Positions 6,001 through 59,208 of a stretch of 64,000 nt of DNA are shown here, piece after piece. The number at the start of each line of letters is the position of its first letter. The stretch's first letter is position 1. This DNA comes from Klebsormidium nitens (taxonomy: Eukaryota; Plantae; Klebsormidiophyceae). A program made the translations under genes and the position numbers. The notes under the pieces are model-generated. The model was not told the origin of the DNA. It saw only the letters and a program-made list of their open reading frames with translations, and did no database searches. Where the stretch lies: assembly GCA_000708835.1 (NCBI GenBank), contig DF237358.1:19772-83771 (forward strand). The letters are read 5' to 3'.

Positions 6001-9000
6001 CCTCTGGGGTCTCGCGCAAGCCACAGGTTTTCGTCCGGAGAAGCGATTGACAGTTTTATAATGTCTCCAGGGCATCCTTTACATTCTGAGATGTTGTCGC
6101 TGCCTTCGACGGTGACTGCTCCCAGCTTGGACAGCGCTGATTCGGCAAGCACTCTCTAACCACAAATGAACGAACCATCAAAACGCGGGAAACCATCAAA
6201 TTGTTACTTGCAAACAGTAAAAAAGCGGAAAAACCCAGATTGCGCTCTCACCCTGGTCGACATGCAGAGATTGGTGATCAGTGTGCTCAGCCCCGGCGTG
6301 TGACAAGCGGCGCCCAGCAGCGCGAGCTTGATCTCATTCACACAGACGACGTCGTGACCGTTCAGGCACGCCGGCTCCAGCCCGCTGTGCACTGCCATGT
6401 TGGCAATCAGGTGCTCGCGGTTCTCGGGTTTCAGGAGCTGGACGATAAGCCGGGGACTGCGGGGGAAACCAATGGAAGGGAGACTCATCTTGTAAGAGCG
6501 GAGAGTTAGAGAAAAGAAAGAGTCAGTTCCCAAAAGACGATAAAAGAGAATCCTACGGTGTCTTGTGAAAGGATGTGAAAGGATTTCAAAGGAATTGCTG
6601 CCTGCACTCCTCCTCGCATCTCCCAAACATCCTCTACGAAACGGAAGGGAAGAAAGCGGAACGGAAATGCGCACCTAAGAGTTGCTTCAGTGCTGTTTGC
6701 GTGGTCACTGAGGGGGCCAGCACAACGCGGCTGCTTCTTACCGTCCAACTCCGGCCAAAAATAAAAGACTAATTGAAGGAACGGAACGAGTCCCATCGGA
6801 ACGGAACGGATTCTGATACCTGTGCGTCGCTCCTGTGCTGTTGGAGTGGTCTTTGAGGGAGTGCTGCACGGCGAGCGCGAGCATGGTGCTGCTGCAGTCA
6901 TCGTCGCTTGCGTCGCTGCAGAACCAAAATTGGCACGCAACGGAACGGAAAAAGACCGGAACGGAAAGCCGCACCTGTGGTGTCGCTCCCGTGCTGTTGG
7001 CGTGGTCCGTGAGGTACTGCTGCACCGAGCGCGAGCATAATCCTGTCGCTGTCCTCCTCGCTCGCGTCATAGCTAAAATTTGATCTGGCACGAAACGAAA
7101 CGGTAATCGAGCGGAACGGAAATCCGCACCTGTGGGTCGCTCCCGTGCTGTTAGTGTGGTCGATGGGGTACTGCTGCACGGCGAGCGCGAGCATGTTGCT
7201 GCTGCATCCCCTGGTTTCTGGTTGAAGGTTAATGGAACGGAACAAAACGAAACAAGCGGGACGCCGCACCTGTGCGTCGCTCCCGTGTTGTTGGCGTGGT
7301 CCGTGCTGCACGGCGAGCGCGAGCATGATGCTGCCGCTTTCTACTCTGCCGCCCTGGGATTCTGGCAAAAGGCAGAAGGATACATAAGAATGAACGGAAC
7401 GAAGCCGAACGGAAGGGGAACTGCGTACCTGTGCGTCGCTCCCGTGCTGTTGGCGTGGTCTTTGAGGTACTGCTGCACGGCGAGCGTGAGCATGATGCTG
7501 CTGCTGTCATCGTCGCTCGCGTCGTGGCAGAACCAAAATTGGCACGCAACGGAACCAGAAAAGGCCGGAACGGAAAGCCGCACCTGTGCGTCGCTCCCGT
7601 GCTATTGGCGTGGTCCGTGAGGTACTGCTGCACAGCGAGCGCGAGCATGATGCTGCTGCCGTCCTCCTCGCTCGCGTCGGGGCAGAACCAAAATTGGCAC
7701 GCAACGGAACCAGAAAAGGCCGGAACGTAACGCCGCACCTGTGCGTCGCTCCCGTGCTGTTGGCGTGGTCCGTGAGGTACTGCTGCACAGCGAGCGCGAG
7801 CATGATGCTGCTGCTGTCCTCCTCGCTCGCGTCGTGGCAGAACTTGTCGGTCAGGAAGAAGCACGCGCTCGCGCGCTCGACGGCGGCGCGCCGCAGGTCC
7901 TTGGCGAACATGGGGGATCCCTCCACGTACTGCATGTGCCGGCTGTGCACGGACGCGCGCATCAGCAGCTCCAGCTGCCGCGAGGGGGCCTGCCGGGAAA
8001 ACGTGTGTGGGTCAGTCTACTATCGTGCGTGAATCGAGAAAAGTCGTTCGAACATCTCGACGTTCGCGATCGGGACTGCATAAGGTGTCGGCTTAGGCGG
8101 TCGCTGGGGCAGGAAACGATTAGATGCCAGACGTTGCTCATCTGATCAAACCGGCCACGTTTTCCAATCCACTTGAGGTAGGTATGTTCGCGCTTGTTGT
8201 CAAAAATGGAGAGCGTCGACAGGAACAAGGCGGTGCATCGACATGTGCTCTTCCATTTTTCTTCTGTAGGTACAGTTCAGGTGACTCTTTGGTTCAACTC
8301 ACCTGTGGGGCCAAGAGGACGAGGTCCTGGTCGCCAAAGCCATGGTCTTTGTCGAAGAACTCGGTGATGAAGTCTGAAACTCCCTGAAAGCGACACGAAA
8401 ACAGGTTAGAGAAAAGTAATTACCCAACAGAACGTTCGACCAACAAAGTAACTCCAAGCCTAAGACGTATCTTGTCGTAAGTAAAGGCGCAGCATTTCCG
8501 GCCAATCCTCCAGACTTCGTACTCTGACTTTTGTGAGGGGCACCATCCATGAAATGCGTCCCATGATAGACTTTGTCCACTGTGAACCTTTGGCTTCAAA
8601 AAGCAGACACATCAGAGCCCGACTGGGTAGCAATGGAAGGACCGGCGGCTTTCTTTGCGAAGGAAGCAATGCCGATAGATTGGAAGCTTCAAAGCCGATA
8701 AGACGTCAGATAAAGAACAACAAATTTCTAGGAGATGCAACCATCACAACAAGACGCACCCTGGTTGTAAGGTTTCCGCAGAGCACCACGTGGCTACCTG
8801 TGCGCAGGGGACGGTACCAGATGCGCGCGTAGACTGCAACCACGTCAATGCGTAAGCCTCTCCACATAAAATCCGGAATTTGAAGCCCCAATAGGCGAAT
8901 TAGCGAGCACTTGCTCAGCCTTTCTTTCGCCAAGCACGAAGTATCCCTCTTGTGTGAAACAAGCGGAACTGAACGAACGAAGTAAGACTTGCAAGCTGTC

Positions 9001-12000
9001 GTCTGCGATAATGACTGCGTCGCATGAGATTGCGGGAACCTTGGGCTTGAGGATGAGAGTAGCAGAGAACACAAGCTCAGTAGAAGCTCAGGGAGGCATA
9101 GGTTGTAAGCAGAGTATACGAAGCCGGCTTACGTGAACTAAGGGAGAGCAGGTTGAAGAGCGATGTCGTCTGCACAGAGGAAACGTCAACAAGGTGCCAG
9201 AGATCAGATTTTCAAAGAATCTTCATTGAGGCTGTATTCAAGTTTGCAGCGCCTTTCTCACGGGTCGAGAGGTCAACCAAACAATATTCTTGACGGCTTT
9301 TGAGGACCGAGGATGCTTGACCGGGCGGCATCATTCTTTGTTTCGGTGTAACCTCTGCTAATCCAAACAGGCTGGTGATCTGCGCCTATTACCAATCTCA
9401 GAGGCTTCAAATTGGAGAAAGTATGATTGCGTTGGGATTAAAAGTGGCCGGCCTCACCTGATACGGCAACACGATAAAGATGACTGCGAGCATGCCCAGG
9501 ATGATGACCTTGCCAGCATCAGACTGCACAGGAACGTTGAGAGGTTTTTAAGGTGCCGCTTCTGGGAAGGCTCTGCAGGTTCTGACGCTAGAGTTGGGTT
9601 GATTTGCACAGGTCACATCGTCCAATCTGGATCCGGAGAGAACGCATAGAGAGCAATGTCTCCACCTCTTGTCATTTGTGGAACCGCACACTTCGCCAAT
9701 CCTACGACCACACTAGGACCACACTGCGACCACTGATTGCAGCATTTCCTGCGGTTTCAGAAGCTGGTCATCAATCAACATCAAACGCAGCCGTTCAAAC
9801 TAGGCCCGCTTCCCCCTTGATCAAACTAGGCCCGCTTCCCCCTTGATCAAGCCGCTTTTGAAGAGTTCTGCTCCTCAAAACCAATCAACATCCAAGAGGA
9901 GACACGAGCCGAATGTGATGCCCCTCAGCTGAAGGACCAACAATACAAAGGAAAAGCAGAACAAGTGAAAACAAGTGAAAGCAAGTGAAAAACAAGTGAA
10001 AACAAGTGAAAGCAGAACTGGCGAACAGATGACGGTCAGCACACTACCTCTGGATGGATGTCCCCATAGCCTATGGTGCTCAGCGAGATGCACGTAAGAT
10101 AGACCGCGTTCAGGAAGGATAGATGCTGCCGCCGCTCCGCGATATTGAGCAGGCCCGCCGTCACAAAGATCGTGCAGACGACCGTATACGCCAGCATCAT
10201 CACCTTGCGGTGCACCTCTGCGGGGGCATAGCGTTTTCCGTTCAGGAAAAGAGATGGTCCCAGGTCTTGTCACAGCGATCAGCAACCAACATGAGTAGGC
10301 CAGCTGCGCAAAGGTCAGGCAGCCAACAGTGTGTGCCAGCATTATCCGGAGGCATAGCGGATCCCGGTGAGGAATCGCAATGGTGAAAGCGATGATAAGG
10401 TTCTGTAATTGCAATTGGTCTTGCTCGGACAAAGGGTGGACTATATCTATCGCAATTTCTAAGCGAACGGACTGGAAGCTAGGTCAAGCGATTGGTGTAG
10501 AGCTTCAATCAGGATACCTCTTGCAAAATAAAAAAACCAGTTCAGAGCGAAGAAAGGGCCTCCTCACCTGCATCGGTGCGGCTCAGCAGACGATGCACTC
10601 GCAAGACGCGAGTGATCCGCAGGATCCGGACCTGCAACAGCAGTACAATAGAGCGTAAACAGAACTATCACGACACGTCTTGTAACAACGGCATGCTTCA
10701 AAAGCCTCTAAGTATCGCCACAACAACCAAGCTTCTTATCTAACCAAGAGAAGCTTCAAGCGACTAGAGTACGAAGGCTTGAGAAGCAGTACTCCAGAGC
10801 GGGTGCGAAAACCTGATCCAATAAAATCATAAAAACCTCTGACTATCTTAGGTTCAGGGCAACCTGCAGGGGCTGCGCAGCATGGAAGCGAGGAGAAGGA
10901 TCACAAAAAAAGCTCAAATCTATGTCGCTTACCACTCTCAGGAAGTTGAGCGTTGTACTCGCGTTTTGAATTGCAGCAAGGAAGGTGGGAACGATGGTCA
11001 GGACATCAACAATGCCCGCCAAGCTGAAGACGTACACGAGGCTGCGAATGCAAGGGGAGAGAACTGAGCGACTTCCCGAGTGATAGTTTAGCGGTTGATA
11101 TCTGTTGCAGCTTCTGCAAAGACTCGCTTCAAGTCAGTGTTGTTGGCTGATCGATTCAACAGCAAGCGATCGACGTTCTTTTCGAAAGAGTTTGTCCCTG
11201 CAGCAGGCAAAAGCCTCTGATGAAAACCATAGCGAGTGTGCCGCAGAGACGCCGGTCTGTTCTTGAGAGAATGATCAGATCCAGCGTTCACACACAGTCA
11301 GCACACCAAGCTCACCGGTTTTCTGCGACGTAGAACCTTAGAAGGTACTCCAGCAGGAAGAAGCTAGAGATGACGAACTGCATTGGAGAAACGCACGCAC
11401 AGGTCATGACGTCTGTCTCATTCTTTGGGTTCTCTTTGGATTGGACGTCCCACGGTTCATTATTCTGGACCGGACGTCTGAAACCCGAAAAAGAGCTTAA
11501 AGGGCCAGATGAGCATTTCAACGACCGACACTAATGTTTCGAGCATCGAGCATCCGTTACAGGGAGCCGTGGCAATTATTGGAATAGTCGCACTCAGCTC
11601 TTGACCAGGTAAATCTCAGTTCCTTTGCACCGTTAGTTTCAAAATTCAAGGAGGCGATCAAGAGTCCCTAGTTCTTGAAGTTCCAGTCTCAGAGTGCCTC
11701 CTGAGAAAGTTCAGCGTCTCAGTGCTTTCTCCTTTTACAGACGGTGGGGACTTTTGGTGGGCTTCATCGGTGCAGACGACTAACCTACTCACGCTTGTTC
11801 AATATCAGCAGAGGAACAGTTTGCAAACGAATTGAGTGGTCTTCGAAGCGCACCTCGACAACGAACTCCCAAGCGGACCAGTTGACAACGTCCCCTGAGA
11901 AAGGCTCCACTCGATACGTCTCAACTATGTACAGCAGGACTGCCAGCATGCTCAGCCCCGTCGAGAAGAGGTCCTGTTCAAATTGCAACCAATGGTTAGA

Positions 12001-13498
12001 CATCTTGATTCTCGAGCCGAGCGGGAGGAAGCTTCAGAGCTTTACAAACTTCCTTCCCGACATGCTCGTGTAGATTAAAAGCTACTGCTCAAGTAAAATG
12101 CGTGTCAAACAAATGCATATCAATTTGACCTGACTGAAGAAACGAGTGAGACTCTTGTCTTTGAAAACCAGAGGCAACACAGGATGAAACTTCTGACGTA
12201 GTACTTGTAATCCGTATCAGGAAAAGGGGAAAGAAGGAAATGGAGTAGGGAAGAAGAGGGAAAGGATCTTCTGACACGAGTTGAAACCTCCTCAAAGCCA
12301 TCAAGACACATGCATTGGTACTGCCACTTTTCAGGACACTTGACAAACACACTGCTCAGTACAACTATTGTTGAGAAGCAATCTCCGGCTTTCAGGGAAC
12401 GGCACAGATTTCTGCTCGGTCATAAGGTCTTTATAAAAACAATCTGCAAATACTGGTGTCGACAGATTCGAGGGTCTTGAGCAGCTTTAGAAGCAATGAG
12501 ATCGCAACCATAAGGGAAGGCGCAACGTACAAGGAACAGACCAGCCCGTGACACCTCCAGGTACTTGCGTAGTCTCTGTCGGAACGACACCGCTGCAAAG
12601 ATGGCTGCGTCACTCTCTGGCCCATGTGGACTGGAGGGTTGAGGCAGGTCCATGCCAGCAGAGCTTGAAATCTGCAAAGAAACCACTGACATAAGTTCCT
12701 TCGCTTCTTAATTCCTTGAACACCCGTTTAAAAGTTCCAGGATGGTTCCACGTTGTTTTCAAACAGTTGGGGTTATGCTTACAATCAATTTCAAAAGGAA
12801 AATGAAGCATAGAGATGCAGGATGGGAACAAAAAGCTGGGAGTGTATAGTGGCGCTGGAACAGCCTGCTAGTCTCATGCCCTTTTCTTATTCCATCTCAT
12901 GGGCGTTTGTGGAGAAGTAGCATATAGACACATCTGTAAATTTTGGCATAGCAAACGACCATGCGTGAGCTAATAGCGAGCAAACCCGTTGTCAGATTCA
13001 AAGATAGGACCTGATGAGAGTATTGCAAGCCTCCCTAGCTTTGATTTAAGTTAGAAGGCCAATCCTTATCCAAGCAGAAACACCAATCTGCAACACAATA
13101 GGCACCGTCAAGGTTTGACAAAGGGCTGACGGAGATCCGCACCACTTGAGAGCTTTGTCACTTGCATCAAGCCAGTGTTTTAAAGTTTGATGAAATCTTT
13201 TCCAGGAGAAAAGCTATCATGACTTTCGTATTCAGCCCCTTCTGCATGGGGCTTGTTACAACCTCAACTGCCCTACCCTACTCTTTCGCACCACCGACTA
13301 CTCCCTGCTTGAGCACTTGGTGGGTTTGAAGCCACAAAAAGGGTGGTACAACTTGTAGGCAACTTCTTTCACCTGCTCAATCTCTGTAACGCGCTTCCTG
13401 TACAATGGACTGTCAGAGCTGCCAGCAACCCTTGGAGGTGCCCTCCCTTCTTCGGCGTCTGGGACTGCTAGCCTCAGGAAAGGGCCTGTAGCTGCCAT
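1..13498 (-). CDS. Slo/BK-family (6TM + two RCK domains) potassium channel; 3' end lies beyond the left edge of the window
   Basis: 22 phase-consistent exons (minus strand, high to low): 13498-13373, 12671-12531, 11973-11854, 11377-11316, 11041-10933, 10631-10568, 10217-10048, 9523-9458, 9169-9133, 8833-8760, 8383-8303, 7989-7739, 6456-6252, 5738-5619, 5193-4951, 4516-4323, 3914-3458, 3170-3000 (GC donor), 2656-2444, 1637-1482, 1070-816, 60-<1. Selectivity filter TIGYGD at 10077-10060; S4 [17 protein letters not shown]; RCK1 [38 protein letters not shown]; [14 protein letters not shown]; RCK2 [19 protein letters not shown]; [12 protein letters not shown]. Start Met (13498) is tentative. Confidence 0.9.
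2811..3085 (-). repeat. Two-copy tandem duplication (154 bp period) of an exon 3' end, donor site and (CCGTT)n-rich intron start in the channel gene
   Basis: GACGACGTGCTTCCGCTGCGCGAGCAG ends at 3000 (followed by gcaagc) and again at 2846 (followed by gtgagc). The copy translates as [10 protein letters not shown]...DDVLPLREQ versus the real [10 protein letters not shown]...DDVLPLREQ. Confidence 0.85.
6630..7845 (-). repeat. About 8-copy tandem array (140-159 bp units) of the RCK1 exon 3' half plus 5' splice site
   Basis: The donor motif (plus-strand cacct/tacct) recurs at 7736, 7581, 7426, 7267, 7127, 6972, 6817, 6672. Each unit encodes a variant of [31 protein letters not shown] followed by ag|gt. 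Divergence increases away from the real exon. Confidence 0.92.
9796..10013. repeat. Short intronic tandem repeats: 26 bp x2 and AAACAAGTGA-like 10-mer x5
   Basis: caaactaggcccgcttcccccttgat at 9796 and 9822; aacaagtga/agcaagtga repeated 9960-10011. Confidence 0.8.
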
Positions 13499-45599: not shown

Positions 45600-47226
45600 C
45601 GGCAGCCTCTATGTAAGACTCTCGTGCAATGACAGCCTGCGTGTTTATCAGGTCCTGGCTATTCGCCGGTTCCATGCTACAGCTATTTGATCTAGTCCAA
45701 CTCAATAAGAACGCGACCCCGATCCATAGGATCTCCGATTTCCAGTGGGACTAAAGGCGGAGCGGTCTTTGTGTACAATAACTGACATTTCAGGAGTATT
45801 GCACGCAAACTGTCCGTATAATTGATAGGTACTTTGTCGTGACGCGGCCGTCCGAACCCGGCCGCCAGTACGTGCGCTTCTGACAACAAGCACTTCACAT
45901 ATATAGGGCTAGGATCGAGATTCCACTATAGCTGAAGCCTGGGCCGATGATCGATTCCTGTCACAATCTGTTCAATTCGATCAATCTCTTCAATTCAATC
46001 TCTTCAATTGCGTACTGTCGGAAGCGGACCTCGACCGCAGTGTTGAGCTTAGGGGGACGGTCAGAATATCGAAAGGGACTTCGATCACGGGCCGAATCAC
46101 CTGGTCAACAGGCTCTGTCAATGCATGCCAACAAGTCACGGTGAACTCTAGTGCCTAAGTCATGAACGTAGTCGCTAGTACGTAGTCAAGGGACGTATGC
46201 ATTAACACTTTTACGCCCGGCAATCATCATTGCACCACAGTATACTGATGTCAGCGTGACTACGTTAGCTAGTGAGTGATGACTCTATCGACTGCACATG
46301 CATACTGCCAGAGACGGACGTCCGACTAGCGCGCGGCGTACCAGGCTTATGATATAAGCGGCGGCCAGGGTCAGCTAGGCTGCCCTGATCGAGCGGCCGA
46401 GGCGGCCCGGCCTCCGAATCATGATCGTGCTTAGTGCCCACTCAACTGATCGACGTCAACGTCACGTTCAATCAATTCATGTGCTTATAATTTGCCAAGT
46501 TGCATGCAACAGATGTACAATCAAGACATCGTTGCAGCGGTTTATATATGAAGTTTGAGCGTGCAAGCGGCTTAACATTTGCAAATTGACGACGTGATCA
46601 CGACTGCGCGAAGTCGGAGCTAGCTTGAAGCTCCGCCAGGGCGGCCGCCCGCTGCCCGACATACATGCCTTGAACTTAGCTGCTTATGCCGGCCTTCTGA
46701 GTCTAACCGTAGAGCTGCATGAATGATCGTACGTGGCCGGCCCGCCCCATGAATATGGCCAAGTGAAAGATAAACACTAGCTACGCATGTCACAAATGAC
46801 GTACGAAAAAACGCTAAGTTCGATCTGAGAAAGTTGACCGCGTCTCGAGTTTTAACGCCTTTCGGCGCTATTGATTTGAAAAACTTCTAAGTGACATATG
46901 ATAACAACTCAACGAACAATATGACACCACGTGGGCCTCATGGTCTGCGTGATAATGATCAGAAGTCACGATGGGTCCACATACATCGTACCACATCCGC
47001 GTATGTTTAGCAGGTCGGAAATGTTTGGTACGTCATGTGCTTCTCTACCTGCCAGTGCCTGGGTGTATGAGTAAAGTTTTTTCACAGTCCACTTTGATCT
47101 AGCTCACACGCGGTGACTACTCTTATCTACAGGTAGAGGTCCAAAAGTATGAGTAAAATTACACTAACATAATACTCTCGATTCTATGATATCTCTCTTC
47201 AAACCCGACAATCTTCTCAGCTTGCT

Positions 47227-49116
47227 TCAAGGAAGAGTATACGCGCTGAAAAAGTTGTAAGTGGCTTGATACGGCACACTCCACGGACGCAGGGTCTGCG
47301 TTGGGAAAGCAAAGACCGGGCAGGGAGCATTGGGTGGTAGCATGCCCCCCGAAATGTCGCTCGTTGTGGCAAATCTGACGGTGGCGAAAGCGCCAGTTCC
47401 CGTGGCTGACGAGTATGTTTGCATGAGCGAGCCATAGCCACCTGCACCGGTTTTAGCTTTGGTGCATTAGCTTTCTTTTCACTGCTTCTTATTATCAATC
47501 TAATCTCGTCATGTTTGGGGTTTACGCGTTTGTTTACGAGTGAACGTAGCATAAGCTTAGGACAGCAGGCGAATCAAGGAATTGATCAGAACAGGATTTG
47601 AAAGATCATTCTCACGTTCGAGTCTAGATGTCAATGGTCAAGCTAAAAAGCTAGCAGAGGTCGAAGGAGCCCACATCGAGATTATGGTGCTCTTCGAAGG
47701 ATTTCAGCCTCGAGGAACTGCAAAGACTGCATGTAGCAACTACTGGTCTCAGTATGCAGAGAACAGCAGACAGCTAATGTGTGCGCATTGGCGTCAGAAA
47801 CTCGCGGGAATGGTTGAGAGAAGGCTAGCTTACCGTCCCTAGGAATGCTTGTCGGTGACGGAAAGGTTCGGGACGTTGACATATCAATTGTCACGGAGCC
47901 ATTGCTCAGATCGAAAATGGACAAACGCTGTCCCTGGAGCGACACAACATTGGAAAGGTTCCCAAGGACGGCGCCATTGGCCACGCTATAGAGGGTGGCA
48001 GAAAGCGTCCCGTTGTCAAAAAGGGCGTCTGCACGTGGGAAAGGAGGTTAAGAAATTCTTGTTCTGGTGACCAGGCACATGGCACGAGCAACTCTTACTG
48101 GGAAGCACTGGCAGCGCCCCATCTTTCATGGTCTGTACTAGTTGTGGTACTGCCTCAATTTAGAGATTTTCAGGAACTGCAGCTTAGCAAGGGCTGGCTA
48201 CTTAAACGGACAGATCAACTCTGTGTATGATCACAACGAAAAATACAGGACAAGTCATTCTGGGGTTTCTTTCGTAATGCACTGCCCTGTCAGCAGCATG
48301 ATCAGTAAAACGATTGAACAGTCCCTCAGGAGTCCAACGCACGCGTCAAGCCAAGGCAGTGGCAAATCAGACTGGGGACATGCATGCTACCATCACTAGG
48401 TTGCCGAATGTGCAAGATTGTCTGCGCAGCCAAAAGCTGGAGCTTTTGTTTGCTTTTGCTAACGCACTCGGCAAGACAGTGCAGAGCTCAACTACTGCAC
48501 GGAATCTGGACGACAGATAGGTTAGAGACCGGGCACACTTACTGGAAGCGTTGCAGGTGTACTCCGCGCTCCCCAGGGCAAAGGCGGACAGTACAACCAC
48601 GTCACCAGGCTTTGGTGCAAGGGAAACCAGCAACGGCTGAGGGGTGGCAACCGGCAGAGTGCCCACTGGCAGAGTCGCGAGGGGCGCAGAAGGAGTCAGG
48701 GCCGGGGGAGAAGACGTTGACACCGGAGTGATGCTCGAGCGATACTCGCAGAACACCACAAAGTCGCAATCACTGTCGATGATGACGCTGAACACGCGGG
48801 AGGCTGCGTTACACGCGCTGGGACTGCTGGCGGCCGCACAGGTCTCAGACTTGGTCTCATCGGTGCAGTAAGGGGACGCGGCCACGTTGCACAGGTACTG
48901 CTTGAGCAGGGGGTTTGCGTTGCAGAAGTCGTCGTTGCCTGAGCCCCTGAAGTACCACCCCGAAGCAGGTAGCAGGTTGAGCTTGTACTCATAGTTGTTG
49001 GTTGCGCAGATGTTGGATGAGAGACGCACCGCCAGGGTTGGCTTCAGAGATGAGAGGGCAATGAGGGCCAGCAGCGGCAGCAAGAGGCCCGACCGGGCAG
49101 CTTGCAGGGGAGCCAT
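47227..49116 (-). CDS. Secreted 327-aa protein: signal peptide + unrecognised 8-Cys domain + Pro/Thr linker + DUF3455-like domain
   Basis: Exons 49116-48543 (574 nt), 48028-47834 (195 nt), 47441-47227 (215 nt) join in frame (984 nt). Signal MAPLQAARSGLLLPLLALIALSSLKPTLA. The C-terminal part follows the DUF3455 pattern as I recall it: PGDVVVLSAFALGSAEYTC...NGSV...GTGAFATV..SGGMLPP..C...VPYQATYNFF. The family call is from memory, not an HMM search. Confidence 0.75.
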
Positions 49117-51755
49117 TGTTGTAGGGGGCAGACTTGTAACCTTGGAAGGAGGATGCGACCGCCGATGGAAAATTCCCAACCTGAAGTCTAGTTTTGAAAG
49201 CGAGACCACTGTGACTGTTCTTCGCAAAGAAAATTTGCTGCTCGCGACCTTTTGGAAGCGATTTTACCTCCAGCTTGTCAATCAGAGCGAGTTCTGCATC
49301 GCGAGCTGCAGTGGCCAGCTTTGCAGCTATAATGATACGAAATTGAGACAACCACCAAAGTCTACGCCGGCCTGGCCTCGATGGCAAGGGGCATCCCACG
49401 GGCATCCCTTGGATTGGGGGAGTTCTCACTTCAAAGGCTCTGCCGTTCTTGCGCTCAAAAAGTGAAAGGCTGCCAGTTGTCTGGCTGTACGTATACGCCA
49501 GAGAAGCTGGCGTCATCCTGCACCCCGGACGTAGCAACTATACGGTACCGGGCCCCGGCTCCGACATGACAACAAACTGCAATGTGCCGACATTCTTTTC
49601 AGACTTTGGGCGCTCCCTAGCTAGTTTTAACGTTTCTCTTGAACTTTCGCCAACTGGCAATCGCTCAAGTTGTGCATTTTCAATCATCAGTATTGCGCAC
49701 TGCGCAGTGCAAATCATTCGATTAATATCCGAGTCAGCTTATTCATATGGCGATTCTATCGTAGCCGTTTGGAAGACCAAAATCCCCTTTGCCAATCATT
49801 GGAATGGAGTTGAGCGGAGAGCTGACAGGGGGAATGCACAATTTGCGCAGGGCGGGCGGTCATATGCACTATAAGTTATCCGCGTCAAGTGATCCCAAAG
49901 AAGTACGGTTGTAGGTACCGTCTGGTAGTGCTGACCCCCTGCTCACCAATTCTCATTACGTACAAGCTGGGTACATTTTGAGATTGCGCATGCAGTGCGG
50001 TACCATCGAAATTAGGGGGCCTGCCATACCGTACCTATTGTACCGTACCTGAAAGTACCGGTACCAACGGCAACAACCAAATATTCCTCGACTTGCCCAA
50101 AATCCTGAATGCATGATAGCATGATTCCGATTTCGAACTTGCACATGAATTTGCCCCGTAGTAAAACCAGGGACCGTGAATATATATCGTGAAACTTGGC
50201 TCTTGCGTACTTGTGAGAAAATTTCGGTAGAGGTTTCATCAACAGCCTCGGCCCTCGAATCTGCTCCAGGAAGGTGCAATGTACGGTACATAGTGTACCA
50301 AGAAGGAGTGTACAGGATGTGCCAATCATTAGCTCCGGAAAGATCGGGGAATTTCCAGGGTCTGACCGGTACGTGAGCACTGAGCAATGACAGTGAGCAG
50401 TGAGCACTGCATGAGGGATTGCACAAATAGCTGCAAGAGGGATTGCCCAACACACAGCTGACAGCCTGACATGGGCATCCTGTTGCATGTGAACTGAGCA
50501 AGTGCGCATGTCAAACAGCATCTAGGCAGAGTCTAGCTGGACCGTGTGCGTTCGCCAGGGCCCAGCTGGCACTTCGGAGAACGTCCTTGCCAAGGCCCCA
50601 ACTTGCTAATAAAGGACCGACTACAGCGCTGTAAGAGTTCCAACAATTATTTAAACTTACAACCTACGGTCTACCGAGTCACCAAATGTGTGTACCTTGT
50701 ATATGTGTGCCGCTGTGTTCTCACGGTCTCGACATACGGCCGGTACTCCGGCATCGTACCCAGTTCAAACCCCACCGTGTAGGACGGTGTGACTCTGCCA
50801 TGGTCCGCCGAGTGCCAGCTGGCGCAACCTCATGTCCAGAGCAGGCCGGAGAACAACAAACAGAAAGGAAGCACCGTGCACACGCACGTGCAACTGAGCA
50901 GAAAGCCCTCGTAGTCTTCAAGGTACTGTGATTGGCTGAGCCTGGAGCATATCAGGCTTGATGGAAGAAATTAAAGGGTGCGTCTGTAACCCCCGGGCGC
51001 CGGGCCCCGGGGCCCTACTGGCCTGGTGTACGTCAGAGGTTGGAGGTACGTCGATCCTGAGTGCAAGGTACCCTAAAGTAACGTCATGGAGCTAGCGCTA
51101 GTTCTTGATTACCGAGGGATTGCGGTCCGCGGAGCTTGATCAAGGATCGGAAGGCTAATTAAGCTCAATCGCGGCCAGGACTTGAGAGCGCTTGCTTGAG
51201 TTTAACTTTATCGAGCAGGCTGCTGAGGACCCCCTGAGGACTTCAAGCAGCACATTTTTTGCGCCCGTCATTGGGACTTGTAACATTGTGAAAGCTTAAG
51301 CAGTCTGCTGCGCGCCGTCTGTAAACCTCTCTGCTTACCGCGCCTTGCTGCCATTCAGGCTGCGCTCAAAAATGGCTCCCCTGCCAGCAGTTATGCTGTC
51401 GCGCTTCTTGCTGCTGCTGGCCCTCACTGCCCTCTCATCTCTGAAACCGACCCTGGGAGTGCGTCTCTCATCCAACATCTGCGCAACCAATAACTATGAG
51501 TATAAGATCAGCCTGCTGCCTGCTTCGGGTTGGTATTACAGGGGCTCAGGCAACGATGACTTCTGCAACGCAAACCCCCTGCTCAAGCAGTACCTGTGCA
51601 ACGTGGCCGCTTCTCCTTATTGCACTGACGAGACCATAGCTCAAACCTGCGCAACCGCCACCAATCCCAGCGCTTGTAATGCAGCCTCCCGCGTGTTCAG
51701 CGTCATCATCGACAGCGATTGCGACTTTGTGGTGTTTTGCGAGTATCGCTCGAGC
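48733..51755. repeat. Inverted duplication: signal peptide and 297-nt 8-Cys domain at 49116-48733 (-) and 51372-51755 (+)
   Basis: The 99-aa domains are identical at 90 of 99 residues; the signal peptides share LALxALSSLKPTL. Confidence 0.95.
49903..50372. promoter_or_regulatory. Dense GTAC cluster in the region between the divergent secreted-protein and RLK genes (candidate SBP/SPL-type binding sites)
   Basis: 16 GTAC in about 470 bp (49903, 49915, 49960, 49971, 50000, 50031, 50040, 50045, 50055, 50061, 50207, 50281, 50286, 50295, 50310, 50369) versus about 2 expected at uniform base composition; four are CCGTAC/GTACGG. A regulatory role is inferred. Confidence 0.35.
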
Positions 51756-54700
51756 CTCACCACGGTCGCAACTCCCTCGCCACCTGCCCCTGTCACCCCG
51801 GTTCCCCCTACTCCAGTAACAACTCCCAGTCCTCCTTCTCCGGTCACCTCCAACCCGCCAACGTCCCCTTCAGGAGTAACGACACCTCCCAGCCCACCAG
51901 CTCCGACTTCTCCATCACCAAATGTTACCAATGGCTCCAGCGGTGGATCCAGCATTGGTATTATTGTAGGGTGCGTGGTTGGTGCTATAGTTGTTATTGC
52001 TGCAGTCATCAGCATTGCCCTCTGCTGCTTCTTCAAAAGCAGGAGGCAGCAGAAAGGAGCTGGCAGCAACCTCCCAACCCATCATGACGCATACAAGGAT
52101 GCTGCGGCGCCGTACTACCCTGCAGCTCCAACCAAACTGCCTGGTAAGCTCTTCCACAATTAGGGTCCCAGCTGACCCGCACTGGCAGATGCCGTGGTAG
52201 ACAGATGTTCATGACCCTGGCCCTGCTGCTGCGATTTTAAATTACTGCATTCGCCACCTTTCTGATTCCGATTTTGCAACGTTGTTTCTCCTCAGGCTGA
52301 CTCTTAAAAGCGCAGAAGCTGGTTGTCCTGTCATCATGATTGTCCTCTGGATCAGCAATGAGCAGCTCAGCTTACCCTCGGTAGCTCCCTAGGGTAATCA
52401 ATGCATGGTAGCAGGCAGTCTTTGAAAACGAAAAAGGGTCTTGAGTCTTGTCACACTGTGGGCTTCAAAAGAGATTTGGTCCCGGCGTGGTGTTGTCTTG
52501 CCAATGACCCTGTCCCCCAGGCCCGACCACAGTTTTTCACCTCTTTGGTTGTGTGTGCCTGTGCCAATTCAACACGTTATTTCAGCAGAGAATCAAGATT
52601 CTGCACGCACCTCTCATAGGTGCTTTTGTTTTTCTTTTCTTCGAACTAACTGGACAGACATGCAAGCAGAAACTCGAAGCAGGGGTATCCAGGTTGTCTC
52701 TACTTTGCTGTTATCATATACCTTCTGCGCCCTCAGACGTCTTATCTTCTTCTTGCCAGGATACGCTAATCCTCAGGCTGGAGCGCTCCCACCAACATCA
52801 GGTGAAAGCGGTTTGTCCTTTGCAACCCCTGCCGGAGATGGCACAAGCAAGGTCTACCCTTATGAGGAGTTGCTCCACTCAACGAACGGGTTCAGTGTCT
52901 CCAACCTGCTCGGCCAAGGAGGCTTCTCAAAGGGTAAGGATAACTTCATCTCATCTGGCAGACGTGTACATTGAGAGGTTCCCTAACACTCTCCGTCAAT
53001 GATGATGAACCTTGATCATGGTATATAAACAAGGATTGAGTATGTCCGCTTCCAAATCTTGGGAAGACATGATGTTCAGCATCTGTTCCTTTGCATGCTT
53101 TTGGCAGTCACAATGTCGAAGTGCGAATGGCATCCAGCTTAAAGTGGTAGCTTGCAGCGCTGACAGCCCCAGCATTCTTTTCAACGCACAATGAAGCCTA
53201 ACATGCACTTTTCGCCACTTTGACAAGTTTCCAGCCCTGACATACACGTTTGCACATCATTGGAACGCGCCATGATATGCTTCTTGTTTCACTTTCGTGC
53301 TGGATAGTTGCTGCCTAAAGCTCATCATAAGGATTGTTGCTGCCTGATCAGCTGGCTCTCCAAATCTCCAAATTCGAAAGCTGCTCTGGTTCAAACGCTT
53401 TTGATACTGCTGTTAGCATCCAACGAAACAACTTGAAGGTTCCGATAATGAGCAAGCTGCAAGCTGTTAACACCAGCCAGTCTGTGAAAGAGAGAAGACC
53501 GATCAGTTGGTATAACTGACAGGCCACGGCCCGTCATTTCTTTGCAGTTTACAGAGGGATGCAAGCGGATGGCACGGCCATTGCGGTGAAGGTCCTGCAA
53601 TCTGACCCTGTAAATGTAAGCTAGCAACTTTTCACCTTCAGCCTTCCTCTAATCGCAGGTATAGAACTGAGCTCTTCTCTGGTAAGATCTAGCTCCTCAC
53701 AAAGATAATCCTTGAACTTCTTCTGTGTTCCTAAATGATTTTCAAGCTAGGTTTGAGTTATAATCAGACCCTACACAGCTACTTGGAAGGTCACGGTGTG
53801 TTAACATCTTCAGAATTCTAGTCTCACAAAAGTCAAAAGTAAAGACCAGTCACATACTGGCAGGTGCCAGGCCTGTACACGGTGAGCTCGAGTTGCAACT
53901 TCAATACCCCTTTCAGCGGCGAAAGTCACAGGTGTTCGGTAATTACTTGTCCAAAAACTTTGTTTGCAATCCCGATTACAATGACGGCAGTCACCCTTTG
54001 AGCTCATCCAAAGTTGAGATCAACTTGAAGCACCTGTGATTAAAGATGAAAATGCCTTATTGATGCAGGGGCCCAACAACGAGAGCTTCTACTCCGAGAT
54101 GGCTATCATGAGCCGTTTGCGTCACAAGTACCTGGTGTCCATGCTTGGATACGCGGCTGCAGGCACAGAACGGATCATTGTGCTCGAGTTCTGCAAGGGG
54201 GGCACTCTGTTCCAAGCGCTCCATGGTAAGAGTTGCTGCTGCTGCTTTGTTCCCACACAACTCATTCTGGAAAAGTGAAATTGACAATCAGGATCTTATA
54301 AGAGGAGCAAGGAGTTAGATAGACTGCTAATGCCTACTCCGTTCCGCTTGTATATGCCCGGCCCTTCCTTCTCTCGTATCGCCCGCAGGTATTTGGCTTA
54401 CGTTCGTTCTGTTTCCTCCTGCAGGCCCTGACAGGCTGGACTGGAACAAGCGCCTCCGCACAGCGCTCTACGTTACGATTGGCTTGGAGTATCTGCACGA
54501 CGGCGTAGAACCGCCTATTCTGCATAGGTAAGACAATATGATCTCAAATTTTGGGTTTGCTTCTAAATGCATTAATGCTATTCTTGATTCCTATGTCGGA
54601 AGAACGAAGGAGGAAGAGAAGTGCCTAATGAGAACTTCGAAACTTTGATGCAAGGCCGCCTAAGCTTTGTCTGCATGCGCCAGAATCGAGTTTGGGTGCG

Positions 54701-57700
54701 TGTCTTCAGGTCGAGCCACTCGGGATATTTTATAAAGCAGATATGAGCGTCGGTTGAGCTTCGCGTCCTCATAAGAGTCGTCTACGGGCGAGCCAGTCCT
54801 TGTTTCTCTCTGATCCATTTTGAGGTAGGCAAGCCAGCGAGGTTGCCAACTTTTGAATCAAACGGTCTGGAATTATCGAGATACCTCCTCGTACCAGTGT
54901 TGGTCGATGGACAATAATCCTCTCGTTTTGAGATATCCAACTCTTGGAGCCTAGCTACTACTTCTCGTCTTACTTCAGGCAAGGCCCATACACAGCTGAT
55001 GTGCGCAGTGCGGCAGGGATTAAACTGTTCAAGTCTTTTCAGTATTCGATGTGCACGTTCAGCTGGAAAGAGTCGATCCATTTGTCTCTATGCAACGTCA
55101 ACCCCGTCACAGCAGGAATAAGTCGGAGTGTAGTCTCCATAATTCCTGGAAGTACCTGACAGTATATATATACTCCCCTTGAATCCATTTCAGGGACATC
55201 AAGAGCGCGAACGTCCTCTTTGCTGATGAGAACAGACTTGCTGCCAAGGTAAAATTGCTGTTGGCATCGCTGGTTTGGTATCTATTGAGGTTAGCAATGC
55301 AAGCGGTCCGGTTTTTGCGGGTGCAAGTTGATGCACGCGCGAGCATGAAGCACTCTTAATACTGATTGCTAGGTCTTCCACTTCGATTTGCGCTCTCTCT
55401 TCCAATTCCTGGCAACTTTTCAACTTTTGTCCGACCGTTCTTGTCAAGCCAGGCAATGAGTTTGTGAACGGGTTGCGTCTAAATAAAGTTCTTTGTGACG
55501 GTCTTTTCTAAGGATTATGCACTGCCAGGCCTTCTGGTCATTGTCCGTGACGCTCCACCTGCAATCAAACACAGTCGGACGTCATCCACTTGACTGGCAA
55601 CAGGCACTGATTATTTCCGATCTCGACTAGCTTTACCTACTCGAGCGCATCGTTTGAGTACACGAATGACGTAGCTAACAAGCTTAATTTGACTGCTTCC
55701 TTGTAGCTGAGCGACTTTGGCGTGGCCAGGTTCGAGGATGGCCCGGGCGCCGTATCAGCTCGGACTCGCGTCTTGGGAACCCGAGGCAAGGGCTCTCTAA
55801 CTTAGAATTTCTACGCCCCTCAGCGCGCGTAAATTAGAATCTTGCGGAACCGAGAACTTGAATATCCTGATTCTCGACAAAGTTCGCTTCGCTCTGGGCC
55901 CTTGAAGGTTTAGGAAAGGCGGGTCCTCCTTAAAGGTAGCGCGTGTGAATGACGGAGTGAGAGCTGGTTTCTACCTTGTTGAATTGGCCAGTTGAACCAG
56001 CCCAACGAATATTGTGTCAGCGTCTGATCAAAGAGGGCTGGCAGCTGGGTTTTGAGGCGCCTTCCTTAACCCACTGCCGCGGTGCCAGTATGTAGGGTCA
56101 AAGCTGCGCAACGGCTGCCTGGTTCGGCGTGGCGCAACCTCGTTGATTTTTTTTTGAATGCCCGTCGGTGACATTCCATTCGTACGTACATAGGTTCTCA
56201 GTCAATGCTTCGGGCTGGGCTTACGTCAAGAGTTATGCCTTTCCGGTGTCCTTACAGCATTCCGCTACTTGAAGTAAGGGTGCGCGTCGAACAAAAAGCT
56301 GCAAAAGGATTTTCAGATTTTGTAGCCAATCGAATGGCTTGGTCGATCCATGCACGTGGTGAACCGAGGTACATACCAGAACAGTGCTCTGGCCTGAAAG
56401 GTACCGTACCTCCTACCTGCCGGTACTGACAGGCAACACTGGAGGCCAAGTAGGTCTTCGGTCGACGCGCAACCTAAATGCATTATGTTCTCATTCTGCT
56501 TGCAGGCTATGTCGCGCTTGAATACCTTCAGTCTGGACAGGTGAGGTCAGGTCCGTCCATGTGCTTGAAGTTCTCGTTCCTCGCTTCTTAGTGGGGATCC
56601 AGTCGTTGCATGCAGAAGAAGTATTAAGGTTGATCCCAGTCGTCTGGCCAACTCACAGTCTAGCAGCTGCTAGAGGATCGTTCATCCAGAGCCTGATCAG
56701 GGATAAAAACTTACTAGGTCATGCGTCGTAGTCCTCAAAGCTATTTTGCGTGGAGATTCTCCTCTGGTTCCCATGTTTTGCTACGGTTGAAGGTTTGCAA
56801 GAAGTTTCCGCTTCGACCCTCAGGTTAGCAAGTACACCGACATCTACAGCCTTGGCGTGCTTCTGTCCGAGCTGGTTACTGGCCGTCCGTGCACCTTCCA
56901 AATGGGGAATGATCAAGTTGCCCTGCGTGACTGGGTGAGTTACACTGGCAGATCGTAGGGTCTGGCAGAACACGCCTTCATGGTTTTTTCACTTTTCCAG
57001 TGCGTCTTCCAGTTGGATGAGAATATACGCACGGACTCGCCATGCGCATCCTTCGAACGTTTTCGCCTGCAGTGGCGAATTGAAGCGGCTGTTCAAATTG
57101 GCTTTTTCCCCAATCGGCTTCTGTACAGATCTTTAGGATCTTTCATTTCTATTGAATCGGTATGGTGTTTCCGAAACGTGCGAGACACACGGTCTTCTTG
57201 GTTTGAGCTTCGTCCGTTTCAAAAACAGTAAACGTTGGATTGTATGAAAATGAGATCACAGCAGCTCCACACAAAAACTGTCCATTCTTGGTCCTAGACT
57301 TCTTTTAGATTCCCGTCTCTTTCTCACCCACTCTTTTGTCGTTCTCGAACTTGAACGAGCGTCACGTCCCAGGAGAGCTTTTCAGAATGGCCGGATTAGA
57401 AACAGCCCTTGTTTTCCGTTTGCTACGCTTTGTTGCTCGGTTTCCGGTCTACCCAACCACCTTGAAAGACTAGCGGACCCCGGGCACGCAATATACGCTA
57501 GCTGATCAAGTCCCTTTTCTAGCTCGCAGACCGGCAACTATATCAATTATAAGAGGTTTTCACAATCAAAAACTTTACAAAACTCACGATTCCTGCCGAA
57601 AGAATCTGGTTTGACACTTTTGAGTTGCCCAGCGCTTTTGAAAAGCCAACGCACTCATCTGAGCAAGACTGGTATACGTTCACTTTGTGCACGCAAACCT

Positions 57701-59208
57701 TCACTGGCAGGTACCACGAATGCGTAGCGCTATTGACTCAGGCTGAAGTGCTGAAAAGGCTTGTCGCATCCGAGTCATATTGGTAGGATTGCATTTTTCA
57801 AAAAAGCGGAACAGTCCTCGGCCAGAGATGAATAACGCCTCCCCAAGCACGGTGACCTCCAGATGAGACTAGTTAGTGGTGGTTTAGCACCCTTGAAATG
57901 GCAGAGTGGGTTGAGAGCAAAACCGTGCTTTATGTGCAGGTCGTTGAAAACAGGAACCAGCCCTTGACTCTAATGGATCCTGCGCTAGGGGGTAACTTCC
58001 ATCCTCAGCAGGCCATCGGACTCATTCAGCTGGCCGTTGAGTGCATGAACCAGAACGAACCCAAGGCTCGTCCTCTGGCTGCCCAAGTGCGTGTCGTTCT
58101 ATCCTTTTATTCTTCCGTTCTTCTGCTAGCTCGTCCTCCTGTTCGGGCGTTTTCCCGTTCTTCTTCTCATTGTACGTCACGTTCTCAGGGAGTTGGTCAG
58201 TCGAAGTACATCACCTTGTCAATTCACTTACGGAGAATGGCCGATTTGAAACATTTTGACTTTGGCAGGGGGCCTGCAGACACGTCATCTGCCAGTGGAT
58301 CAGATTTCATGCAATCTAGGCAACTAGCAGGCCCCAGAACGAAGCAACCAGAATTTCGAGGTCTTTATAATTCAGTAGCTGATGTGAAGCTCGTGGTATG
58401 CATTTGATTCTTCTTGTCATTTTCCACCTGTCAGTGGGGGCGTTTTAAAGTCTTGCCTACACATTCGACAAGCGACAAGTGCTTAAAGCAGGTCTCAACG
58501 TCCTTATATTTCCGAATTTCAAGGGATGCTTGGAACTTCGTCAGGTGATAAAGCTTCGATCCTCCTTTTGCACATCCGGGGAGCGTTGCTGACAACACAC
58601 TTTATTGGAGCTTCAGTTACGTTTCAGCAGACTGTCAGAATGTCAACCTTATAAATTTTGCGAACCCTTCCATTATACATTTCATCTCTTCCTTCGGATA
58701 CGCGGAAAGCGTCAAAACTGCATGAACAAGGGGGGCTGCTCCTGCTAAACCTAGGATTTAATCTGAAGTGGACCCGTAGAACTAACTGCCTTTGAAAACG
58801 AACGGCACAAACCAAGACTCTTGTTACCTCCGCTTACGGAAAGAAGTCTACCGTCTCTCTTTCGATCGTTAGTCGGATCTGGCACACGAGCCAACTCACG
58901 CATGTACCTTTCCCTGTCCTCCGCAGGTCCACCAGCGCATCGAGCAGTTGATCGGCATCACGGCCGGATCGCCGCCGTCCGCAGAACAGGTCTTCGTCCC
59001 CCCTAGCGGCGGCCTCGAGAACAACTACAGACCCGCCGTCGTGACAAATTCGCTGACGGGCTCGGAGGGGTCCTATGGCGCCCCTTCCATTTCGGGAGGC
59101 TCCAGTATTGTCGGCGATGCCATGAATGGGTTTCGGAGCGGCGGGCCGGAGCCCCCGAAGAACATGACGATGTTGCAGAATTTCACCAACATCCAAACGG
59201 GACGTTAA
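51372..59208 (+). CDS. Receptor-like Ser/Thr kinase (RLK/Pelle): signal peptide, 8-Cys ectodomain, Pro/Thr/Ser stalk, TM helix, RD kinase
   Basis: Exons 51372-52143, 52760-52933, 53548-53609/53615, 54069-54225, 54425-54527, 55194-55248, 55707-55785 (GC donor), 56506-56540, 56824-56934, 57940-58086, 58927-59208. TM IGIIVGCVVGAIVVIAAVISIALCCFF (about 51954-52034) then [122 protein letters not shown]. Confidence 0.93.

Follow-up and report, generated by a model that had tools for sequence, protein, structure and literature searches.

A receptor-like kinase gene and a facing secreted-protein gene of Klebsormidium nitens share an orphan 8-cysteine domain, probably through ectodomain capture

Two genes face each other head to head in a 64-kb stretch of scaffold DF237358.1 from the streptophyte alga Klebsormidium nitens (assembly GCA_000708835.1); this whole stretch is called the window below. 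KFL_004090110, on the minus strand with its ATG at 49116, encodes a secreted protein of 327 amino acids (aa), here P0001, and the gene for GAQ88210.1, on the plus strand with its ATG at 51372, encodes a receptor-like kinase (RLK) of 660 aa, here P0003. Both proteins begin with a signal peptide followed by the same domain of about 100 aa, which contains eight cysteines (the 8-Cys domain). We consider it likely that the kinase captured this ectodomain from the facing gene, with the secreted protein as donor. The overall architecture had been read from the nucleotide sequence in a preliminary description of the region, and it is upheld here: an RLK gene and a gene for a secreted protein with a DUF3455-like tail, which have an unrecognised 8-Cys domain in common.

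According to the list of open reading frames (ORFs), the two start codons lie 2256 bp apart, and the stop codons are at 47227 for the secreted gene and 59208 for the kinase gene. Both gene models agree with the public annotation, in which GAQ88210.1 is named "Putative serine/threonine protein kinase" and a Pkinase gene is called beside KFL_004090110 on DF237358.1. A BLASTP comparison of the first-exon ORF products gave 111/133 identities (E 7e-73). Over residues 30-128, the 99-aa domain proper, P0001 and P0003 are identical at 90 of 99 positions, and both the positions of the two ATGs and the 91% identity of the domain are as previously described. The signal peptides had been called near-identical, which is an overstatement, with 19 of 29 residues the same.

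At the DNA level the likeness takes the form of a single inverted repeat, 48699-49084 against 51404-51789 at 88% identity, and the window contains no other inverted repeat that reaches 150 nt. As delimited by DNA alignment and a 30-nt identity profile, the shared segment measures 415 bp and codes for the signal peptide and the 99-aa domain; it occupies 48699-49116 on the minus strand in the secreted gene (ATG to about codon 139) and 51372-51789 on the plus strand in the kinase gene. Similarity begins at the ATG and fades over nt 390-420, where the Pro-rich linker starts. Beyond these limits nothing could be aligned between the two genes, either upstream (local score 24, shuffle mean 22) or downstream (19, against 17.6). 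Within the segment the third-position differences are evenly spread and show no significant conversion mosaic (p 0.26); the pair therefore bears no trace of partial conversion at a later time. The longest stretch of unbroken identity, at 53 nt, is marginal (p 0.04) and explicable by constraint.

All eight cysteines of the domain are kept wherever the sequence is complete, and they probably form four disulfides. The domain matched no Pfam family at E<=1, among them DUF26/Gnk2, PAN/Apple, S-domain, malectin, WAK/EGF, CFEM and nsLTP; sequence and profile searches of PDB gave nothing better than E=1, and in the ESM Atlas the best score was 0.61, with sub-threshold Cys-rich look-alikes only. When a profile built from three copies of the domain was run against 1.84 billion representatives, seven proteins were returned, four of them real: P0001, P0003, P0006 (described below) and P0004, a fragment of 112 aa found on two contigs of JGI metagenomes. 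The other three (P0005, P0007 and P0008), bacterial repeat proteins in which only 35-40 residues matched, were dismissed as chance. The statement that the domain belongs to no described family thus holds for Pfam, PDB and the Atlas, and the search across databases brought up no well-known family in its place. No kinase other than P0003 was found to carry the domain in any protein search, including that of the 1.84e9 representatives. AlphaFold2 predictions were of low confidence, both for whole P0001 from its single sequence (pLDDT 33.7) and for the 8-Cys domain with a 5-sequence alignment (pLDDT 34.4).

The secreted protein has no hydrophobic segment beyond its signal peptide, as judged by a hydropathy scan. 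Its C-terminal 160 aa have no sequence homologue that we could find save its own orthologue, and neither P0001 nor this orthologue (P0002, see below) matched Pfam DUF3455 (PF11937) even at E<=10. In the ESM Atlas, 99 of the 100 clusters nearest to the C-terminal 160 aa are DUF3455 (best score 0.93, with 205 of 256 features shared), and the C-terminal part aligned with a DUF3455 model at a TM score of 0.69 over 140 residues, both sides being predicted models. It is reasonable to call the domain DUF3455-like in the sense of a distant predicted resemblance, not of proven membership. The earlier assignment of this gene thus stands as to the missing transmembrane helix and, through Atlas features and structure, as to the likeness to DUF3455, but finds no support in Pfam. 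The function of DUF3455 is not known, and it is met mainly in lists of fungal secretomes.

The secreted form, that is, the 8-Cys domain together with a divergent DUF3455-like barrel, is present in three other algae. P0002, from the transcriptome of a close relative, has 328 aa and is collinear with P0001 over the full length at 74% identity. A JGI metagenome contig, L003, encodes the 8-Cys domain, the linker and the start of the C-terminal domain, plus the last exon at 52% identity; no kinase lies within 10 kb on either side of this homologue. P0006, a protein of 268 aa from Logan assemblies, likewise shows the 8-Cys domain, the linker and the start of the C-terminal domain ("GDVVIL..A.GS..Y.C"). 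The distant homologue on L003 (10001-10720) and on a second contig, L004 (JGI metagenomes 3300060284 and 3300060285), has an in-frame stop within its 8-Cys domain ("DSNCD*VVSCEY"). This stop codon, common to the contigs of both samples, sits where P0006 has Trp and K. nitens Phe, and could mark a pseudogene or a nonsense allele peculiar to one strain.

The kinase gene bears out its earlier reading as a Pro/Thr stalk, a transmembrane helix and an RD kinase following the domain. P0003 has the layout of an RLK/Pelle protein: signal peptide, 8-Cys domain, Pro/Thr/Ser stalk, single transmembrane helix and cytoplasmic kinase. The helix (aa 189-225) is strongly hydrophobic, with a Kyte-Doolittle score of 3.1, and the N-terminus is hydrophobic too. 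The Pkinase match has an E value of 2.7e-44 and covers profile positions 2-259 of 263, and the RD-kinase motifs are all present (GQGGFS at 309, AVK at 328, HRDIK at 424 and DFG at 446). Its closest relative is a K. nitens paralog, P0010 (714 aa, scaffold DF237545.1), which shares 73% identity with it between aa 190, immediately ahead of the transmembrane helix, and the C-terminus. P0010 has a Cys-rich ectodomain of about 200 aa, unrelated to the 8-Cys domain, for which the Atlas likewise offered sub-threshold Cys-rich look-alikes only; DNA homology between the two loci is limited to the transmembrane and kinase exons. Kinship of the two ectodomains was rejected, the single BLASTP match (E 0.013, 50 aa, 22% identity) being driven by cysteines. 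Outside Klebsormidium, nearly all the best matches of P0003 are PERK kinases of land plants, at 33-40% identity, and to judge from these matches the kinase would be PERK-like.

The secreted form occurs in other algae and no other domain-bearing kinase was found, which argues that the secreted two-domain form is ancestral. Divergence was estimated by the Nei-Gojobori method at synonymous (dS) and non-synonymous (dN) sites, with omega as their ratio. Between the secreted and the kinase copy of the domain, dS is 0.377 and dN 0.049 (omega 0.13). Against the P0002 orthologue, the secreted copy gives dS 0.60 and dN 0.154 (omega 0.256) and the kinase copy dS 0.63 and dN 0.155 (omega 0.246), and the kinase exons of P0003 and P0010, compared over 203 codons, give dS 0.76 and dN 0.077 (omega 0.101). 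Since the dS of the pair is below that to the orthologue and below that between the paralogs, the segment common to the two genes postdates both the separation of the species and the duplication of the kinase. Synonymous changes within the pair's domain are in significant excess (Fisher p 3e-8). When P0002 is taken as the outgroup, the branch to the secreted copy carries 9 synonymous and 6 non-synonymous changes and that to the kinase copy 10 and 6; the numbers are equal enough to argue that the kinase copy is as constrained as the conserved secreted copy. Taken from the sequences, the kinase appears to have acquired its neighbour's signal-peptide and domain module, or to have been converted to it, late. 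The preliminary description had offered, as one alternative, that the pair records a kinase in the act of capturing an ectodomain. That alternative is now favoured, given the conserved secreted form, the unique kinase form with an ectodomain unlike that of its paralog, and the young shared segment, but the capture is not a fresh one, with dS at 0.38 and purifying selection on both copies.

Transcription of the two genes was followed in RNA contigs of four studies aligned to 47200-53199. Both genes are expressed in all four and spliced as modelled, so that both splice models of the earlier description are confirmed. The secreted gene (minus strand) has three coding exons. Exon 1 (48543-49116) contains the signal peptide, the 8-Cys domain, the Pro-rich linker and the start of the C-terminal barrel; exon 2 (47832-48028; tblastn, P0001 aa 191-257) the middle of the DUF3455-like domain; and exon 3 (47227-47439; tblastn, aa 257-327) its end, "...VPYQATYNFFSAYTLP", and the stop. 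The RNA joints 48028/48543, with CT..AC ends, and 47439/47832 were found in four runs and define introns at 48029-48542 and 47440-47831; the joined exons give P0001 exactly. A 5' untranslated region of at least 580 nt, which is unusually long, extends over 49117-49698 on the same strand (RNA contig 48878-49698, no mismatches), and depth is zero beyond 49800.

In the kinase gene (plus strand), exon 1 (51372-52142) is a single ORF for the signal peptide, the 8-Cys domain, the stalk, the transmembrane helix (about 51936-52046) and the juxtamembrane region; domain, stalk and helix all lie within one uninterrupted exon. It is joined at 52142/52759 (GT..AG, four runs) across an intron at 52143-52758 to the exons for the RD Ser/Thr kinase domain and the C-terminal tail, which extend over 52759-59208 as defined by tblastn of P0003, the Pkinase match and the motifs. 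By tblastn, the approximate coding pieces are 52759-52933, 53538-53615, 54063-54233, 54424-54528, 55192-55251, 55707-55799, 56503-56555, 56821-56937, 57940-58089 and 58912-59208. RNA contigs fit each copy of the shared segment with zero mismatches in the four studies and chain into its unique flanks; on the kinase side the unitigs run 51176-51488, 51459-51715 and 51686 onward, the last being about 2.1 kb long and running on through the kinase exons.

Transcripts of the two genes start about 1.4 kb apart. The spacer between the transcription units (49699-51085) is almost silent in RNA, with a depth of 0 to 4 in four runs, and the silence of 49800-51000 argues that the signals over the genes are RNA and not DNA contamination. 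One RNA contig of very low depth was seen at 50656-50967. Promoters are not obviously shared, and the layout is not that of a tight bidirectional promoter. Contig depth, which is a poor measure of expression, was about 3500 for the secreted gene and 600-900 for the kinase in one run, 110 and 95-140 in another, 35 and 11-16 in a third, and 17 and 33-48 in the fourth.

From these observations the following course of events is proposed. The original N-terminal ectodomain of a PERK-like kinase would have been replaced by the first 415 bp of the facing gene, the donor being a conserved secreted protein of two domains, an 8-Cys module and a divergent DUF3455-type beta-barrel joined by a Pro-rich linker. 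The 5' junction would lie at the start codon and the 3' junction in Pro-rich low-complexity coding sequence. This event, or the last homogenisation, would have come after the kinase duplication and after the divergence of K. nitens from the closest relative sampled, and both copies would since have been under equal purifying selection, in genes that are both transcribed and correctly spliced. As the shared 415-bp segment is part of an expressed kinase, the receptor should display the same extracellular module as the secreted protein. We infer that this module serves in binding or targeting, most plausibly to a cell-wall or other extracellular component; if it does bind a target, the receptor and the soluble protein would address the same one and could either compete or work together, as in SRK/SLG, CRK/CRRSP and LysM-RLK/LYM systems. 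The two proteins could act as receptor and decoy, receptor and co-receptor, or receptor and homophilic ligand.

The locus of the paralog P0010 (L007, on DF237545.1) presents a second pair of this kind, which the preliminary description does not mention and which is the strongest fact in support of its interpretation. A tblastn search with P0010 as query located another copy of its ectodomain, inverted and 1.7 kb upstream. Inverted repeats at this locus pair 6338-6861 with 11645-12168 at 95% and 7478-7620 with 10857-10999 at 85%, and the duplication spans three exons and two introns, with similarity stopping in the Pro-rich stalk. Identity along it is uneven: about 70% in exon 1, 51-75% in the introns, 81-87% in exon 2, 84-88% in the last 200 nt of intron 2 and 98-100% in exon 3 (dS 0.076). 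Such a mosaic is what a recent gene-conversion tract within an older inverted duplication leaves behind, and conversion has kept the kinase and its twin alike. The partner gene (L007:5929-8327, minus strand) keeps GT/AG at all sites homologous to the splice sites of the kinase, which yields an intact ORF of 356 aa; the public model of 122 aa is probably wrong. The predicted protein, for which a Pfam search returned no family, consists of a signal peptide, a P0010-type ectodomain, PAPPAPT-type repeats and, following small residues, a hydrophobic C-terminus of 16 residues, which by eye resembles a signal for a glycosylphosphatidylinositol (GPI) anchor. The partner is probably a partial duplicate of the kinase, that is, a change in the direction from kinase to secreted protein.

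A head-to-head, kinase-less twin therefore recurs in this kinase clade, at two paralogous loci. At both, the similarity between kinase and twin ends within the coding sequence of the Pro-rich linker (51790-51930 in the window; L007:12170-12260), which suggests that CCN-rich low-complexity DNA serves as a recombination boundary for module exchange. A broader proposal, to which we give only a small chance, is that this Klebsormidium clade systematically keeps a divergent, kinase-less copy of the ectodomain, soluble or lipid-anchored, and that inverted-repeat gene conversion homogenises it with the kinase and forces receptor and partner to co-evolve. Such pairs would be an algal counterpart, older than land plants, of pairs of the SRK/SLG type, built on two undescribed Cys-rich domains and used for recognition of self, cell wall or partner.

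The same locus supplies the best argument for a different history of the window pair, in which an old receptor/soluble pair has undergone concerted evolution and the 88-91% identity marks a gene-conversion tract between inverted 5' segments, not a late capture. Conversion has left its mosaic at the P0010 locus, with exon 3 at 98-100% amid introns at 51-75%, both paralogous kinases possess a head-to-head twin, and the homology in the window is sharply bounded and coding only, as expected of a conversion tract between otherwise diverged genes. Yet no domain-bearing kinase from another organism was found among the 1.84e9 representatives, no kinase lies within 10 kb of the distant homologue from the metagenomes, and the third-position differences of the window pair are even, with no mosaic (p 0.26). 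The two twins, moreover, are unrelated in ectodomain and in partner, and separate events account for this better than a single pair passed down. On balance we regard an old pair as unlikely.

Capture of the ectodomain from the facing gene thus remains our preferred reading, and several points weigh against it. Both the direction and the date of the transfer presume that no later gene conversion took place. As conversion does happen at the P0010 locus, P0003 could have carried the domain for longer than its dS suggests. The negative result for domain-bearing kinases elsewhere is a weak one, since the databases are largely transcriptome and metagenome assemblies and no orthologue of P0003 was found in the relative. 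The putative place of the kinase in the PERK clade is taken from best matches. As to function, the structure models of the module are not usable (pLDDT 34), and a binding role is purely our supposition. Finally, the ratio of secreted-gene to kinase depth ranges from about 0.4 to about 4.5 across the four runs, a roughly tenfold spread on a poor measure. Co-expression is thus unsupported, and with promoters that are not obviously shared, co-regulation of the pair stays a conjecture of the preliminary description.

It could also be that the chimeric kinase is a neutral by-product of local inverted duplication, with a functionless ectodomain and no selected relation to its neighbour. The fusion is indeed found in a single species, and neither interaction nor co-regulation of the pair is demonstrated. 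At a dS of 0.38, however, the comparison of the two copies still gives an omega of 0.13, with 6 amino-acid changes in the kinase copy against 6 in the secreted one; the eight cysteines, the signal peptide, the transmembrane helix and the kinase catalytic motifs are all intact, and four studies show transcription and splicing of the gene, all of which makes such an accident very improbable. An artefact, in which the assembly turned one copy into a false inverted duplicate or the exon for the domain is foreign to the kinase gene, has in its favour only the general risk that inverted repeats pose in draft assemblies and can practically be dismissed: the copies differ at 12% of bases, domain, stalk and helix share one unbroken exon, and the zero-mismatch RNA contigs of each copy, chained into unique flanks in four independent studies, refute it.

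Elsewhere in the window, a family of direct repeats was noted at 6817-7898; its four copies, of which three stand in tandem, are about 155-163 nt long, with 91%, 87% and 66% identity to the reference copy.

RLKs have diversified mainly through new ectodomains, and swaps of ectodomains are usually inferred from deep phylogenies. In this case a single early-diverging streptophyte shows the putative donor, the recipient, the junctions (at the start codon and in the Pro-rich linker) and a paralog without the swap. Twins recur at two loci, with clear gene conversion at one of them, which suggests that receptors with matched partners are older than land plants. With two genes and one 100-aa domain, the pair makes a small and testable system.

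Among known systems, the closest likeness is to SRK and SLG of Brassica, a receptor kinase and a secreted glycoprotein that share an S-domain and evolve in concert within a haplotype. As there, the kinase adjoins a secreted protein with the same ectodomain at about 90% identity (91% between the neighbours, against 74% to the orthologue), both genes are expressed, and gene conversion is seen, in our case at the P0010 locus. The Klebsormidium pair differs in having an orphan 8-Cys module in place of the B-lectin, S-locus and PAN domains, in its head-to-head arrangement, and in its occurrence in a streptophyte alga. Its soluble gene would be the ancestral form and has a second domain of its own (DUF3455-like), and the pair is not known to serve in recognition. 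Soluble or GPI-anchored ectodomain partners of plant receptor kinases are also known, as in LYM/CEBiP with the LysM-RLKs. The twin predicted at L007 resembles these in combining a signal peptide, the ectodomain of the kinase, Pro-rich repeats and a C-terminus that by eye is like a GPI signal, but its ectodomain is an orphan.

P0003 has in common with the PERKs, its best matches at 33-40% identity, a Pro/Ser/Thr-rich stalk before a single transmembrane helix. The PERKs have a proline-rich, extensin-like ectodomain only, whereas the stalk of P0003 comes after a cleavable signal peptide and a folded Cys-rich domain. DUF3455 (PF11937) proteins are secreted by bacteria and fungi and have been listed among fungal secretomes and effectors, and P0001 departs from them in the extra 8-Cys module that precedes its barrel. 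In the DUF26 proteins (CRRSP, CRK and PDLP), which are reported to be confined to land plants, this domain arose in secreted proteins and was joined to kinases later, secreted forms have been re-born through partial kinase duplication, and gene conversion has occurred among neighbours (PMC6368629). Both directions seem to be present in Klebsormidium, from secreted protein to kinase in the window and, at L007, probably as a partial kinase duplicate. Unlike DUF26, the algal 8-Cys domain shows no sequence relation to it (no Pfam match) and occurs in one pair, not in a large tandem family. The kind of system is a known one; its domains, the architecture of the donor, its occurrence in an alga and its repetition at a second locus are new.

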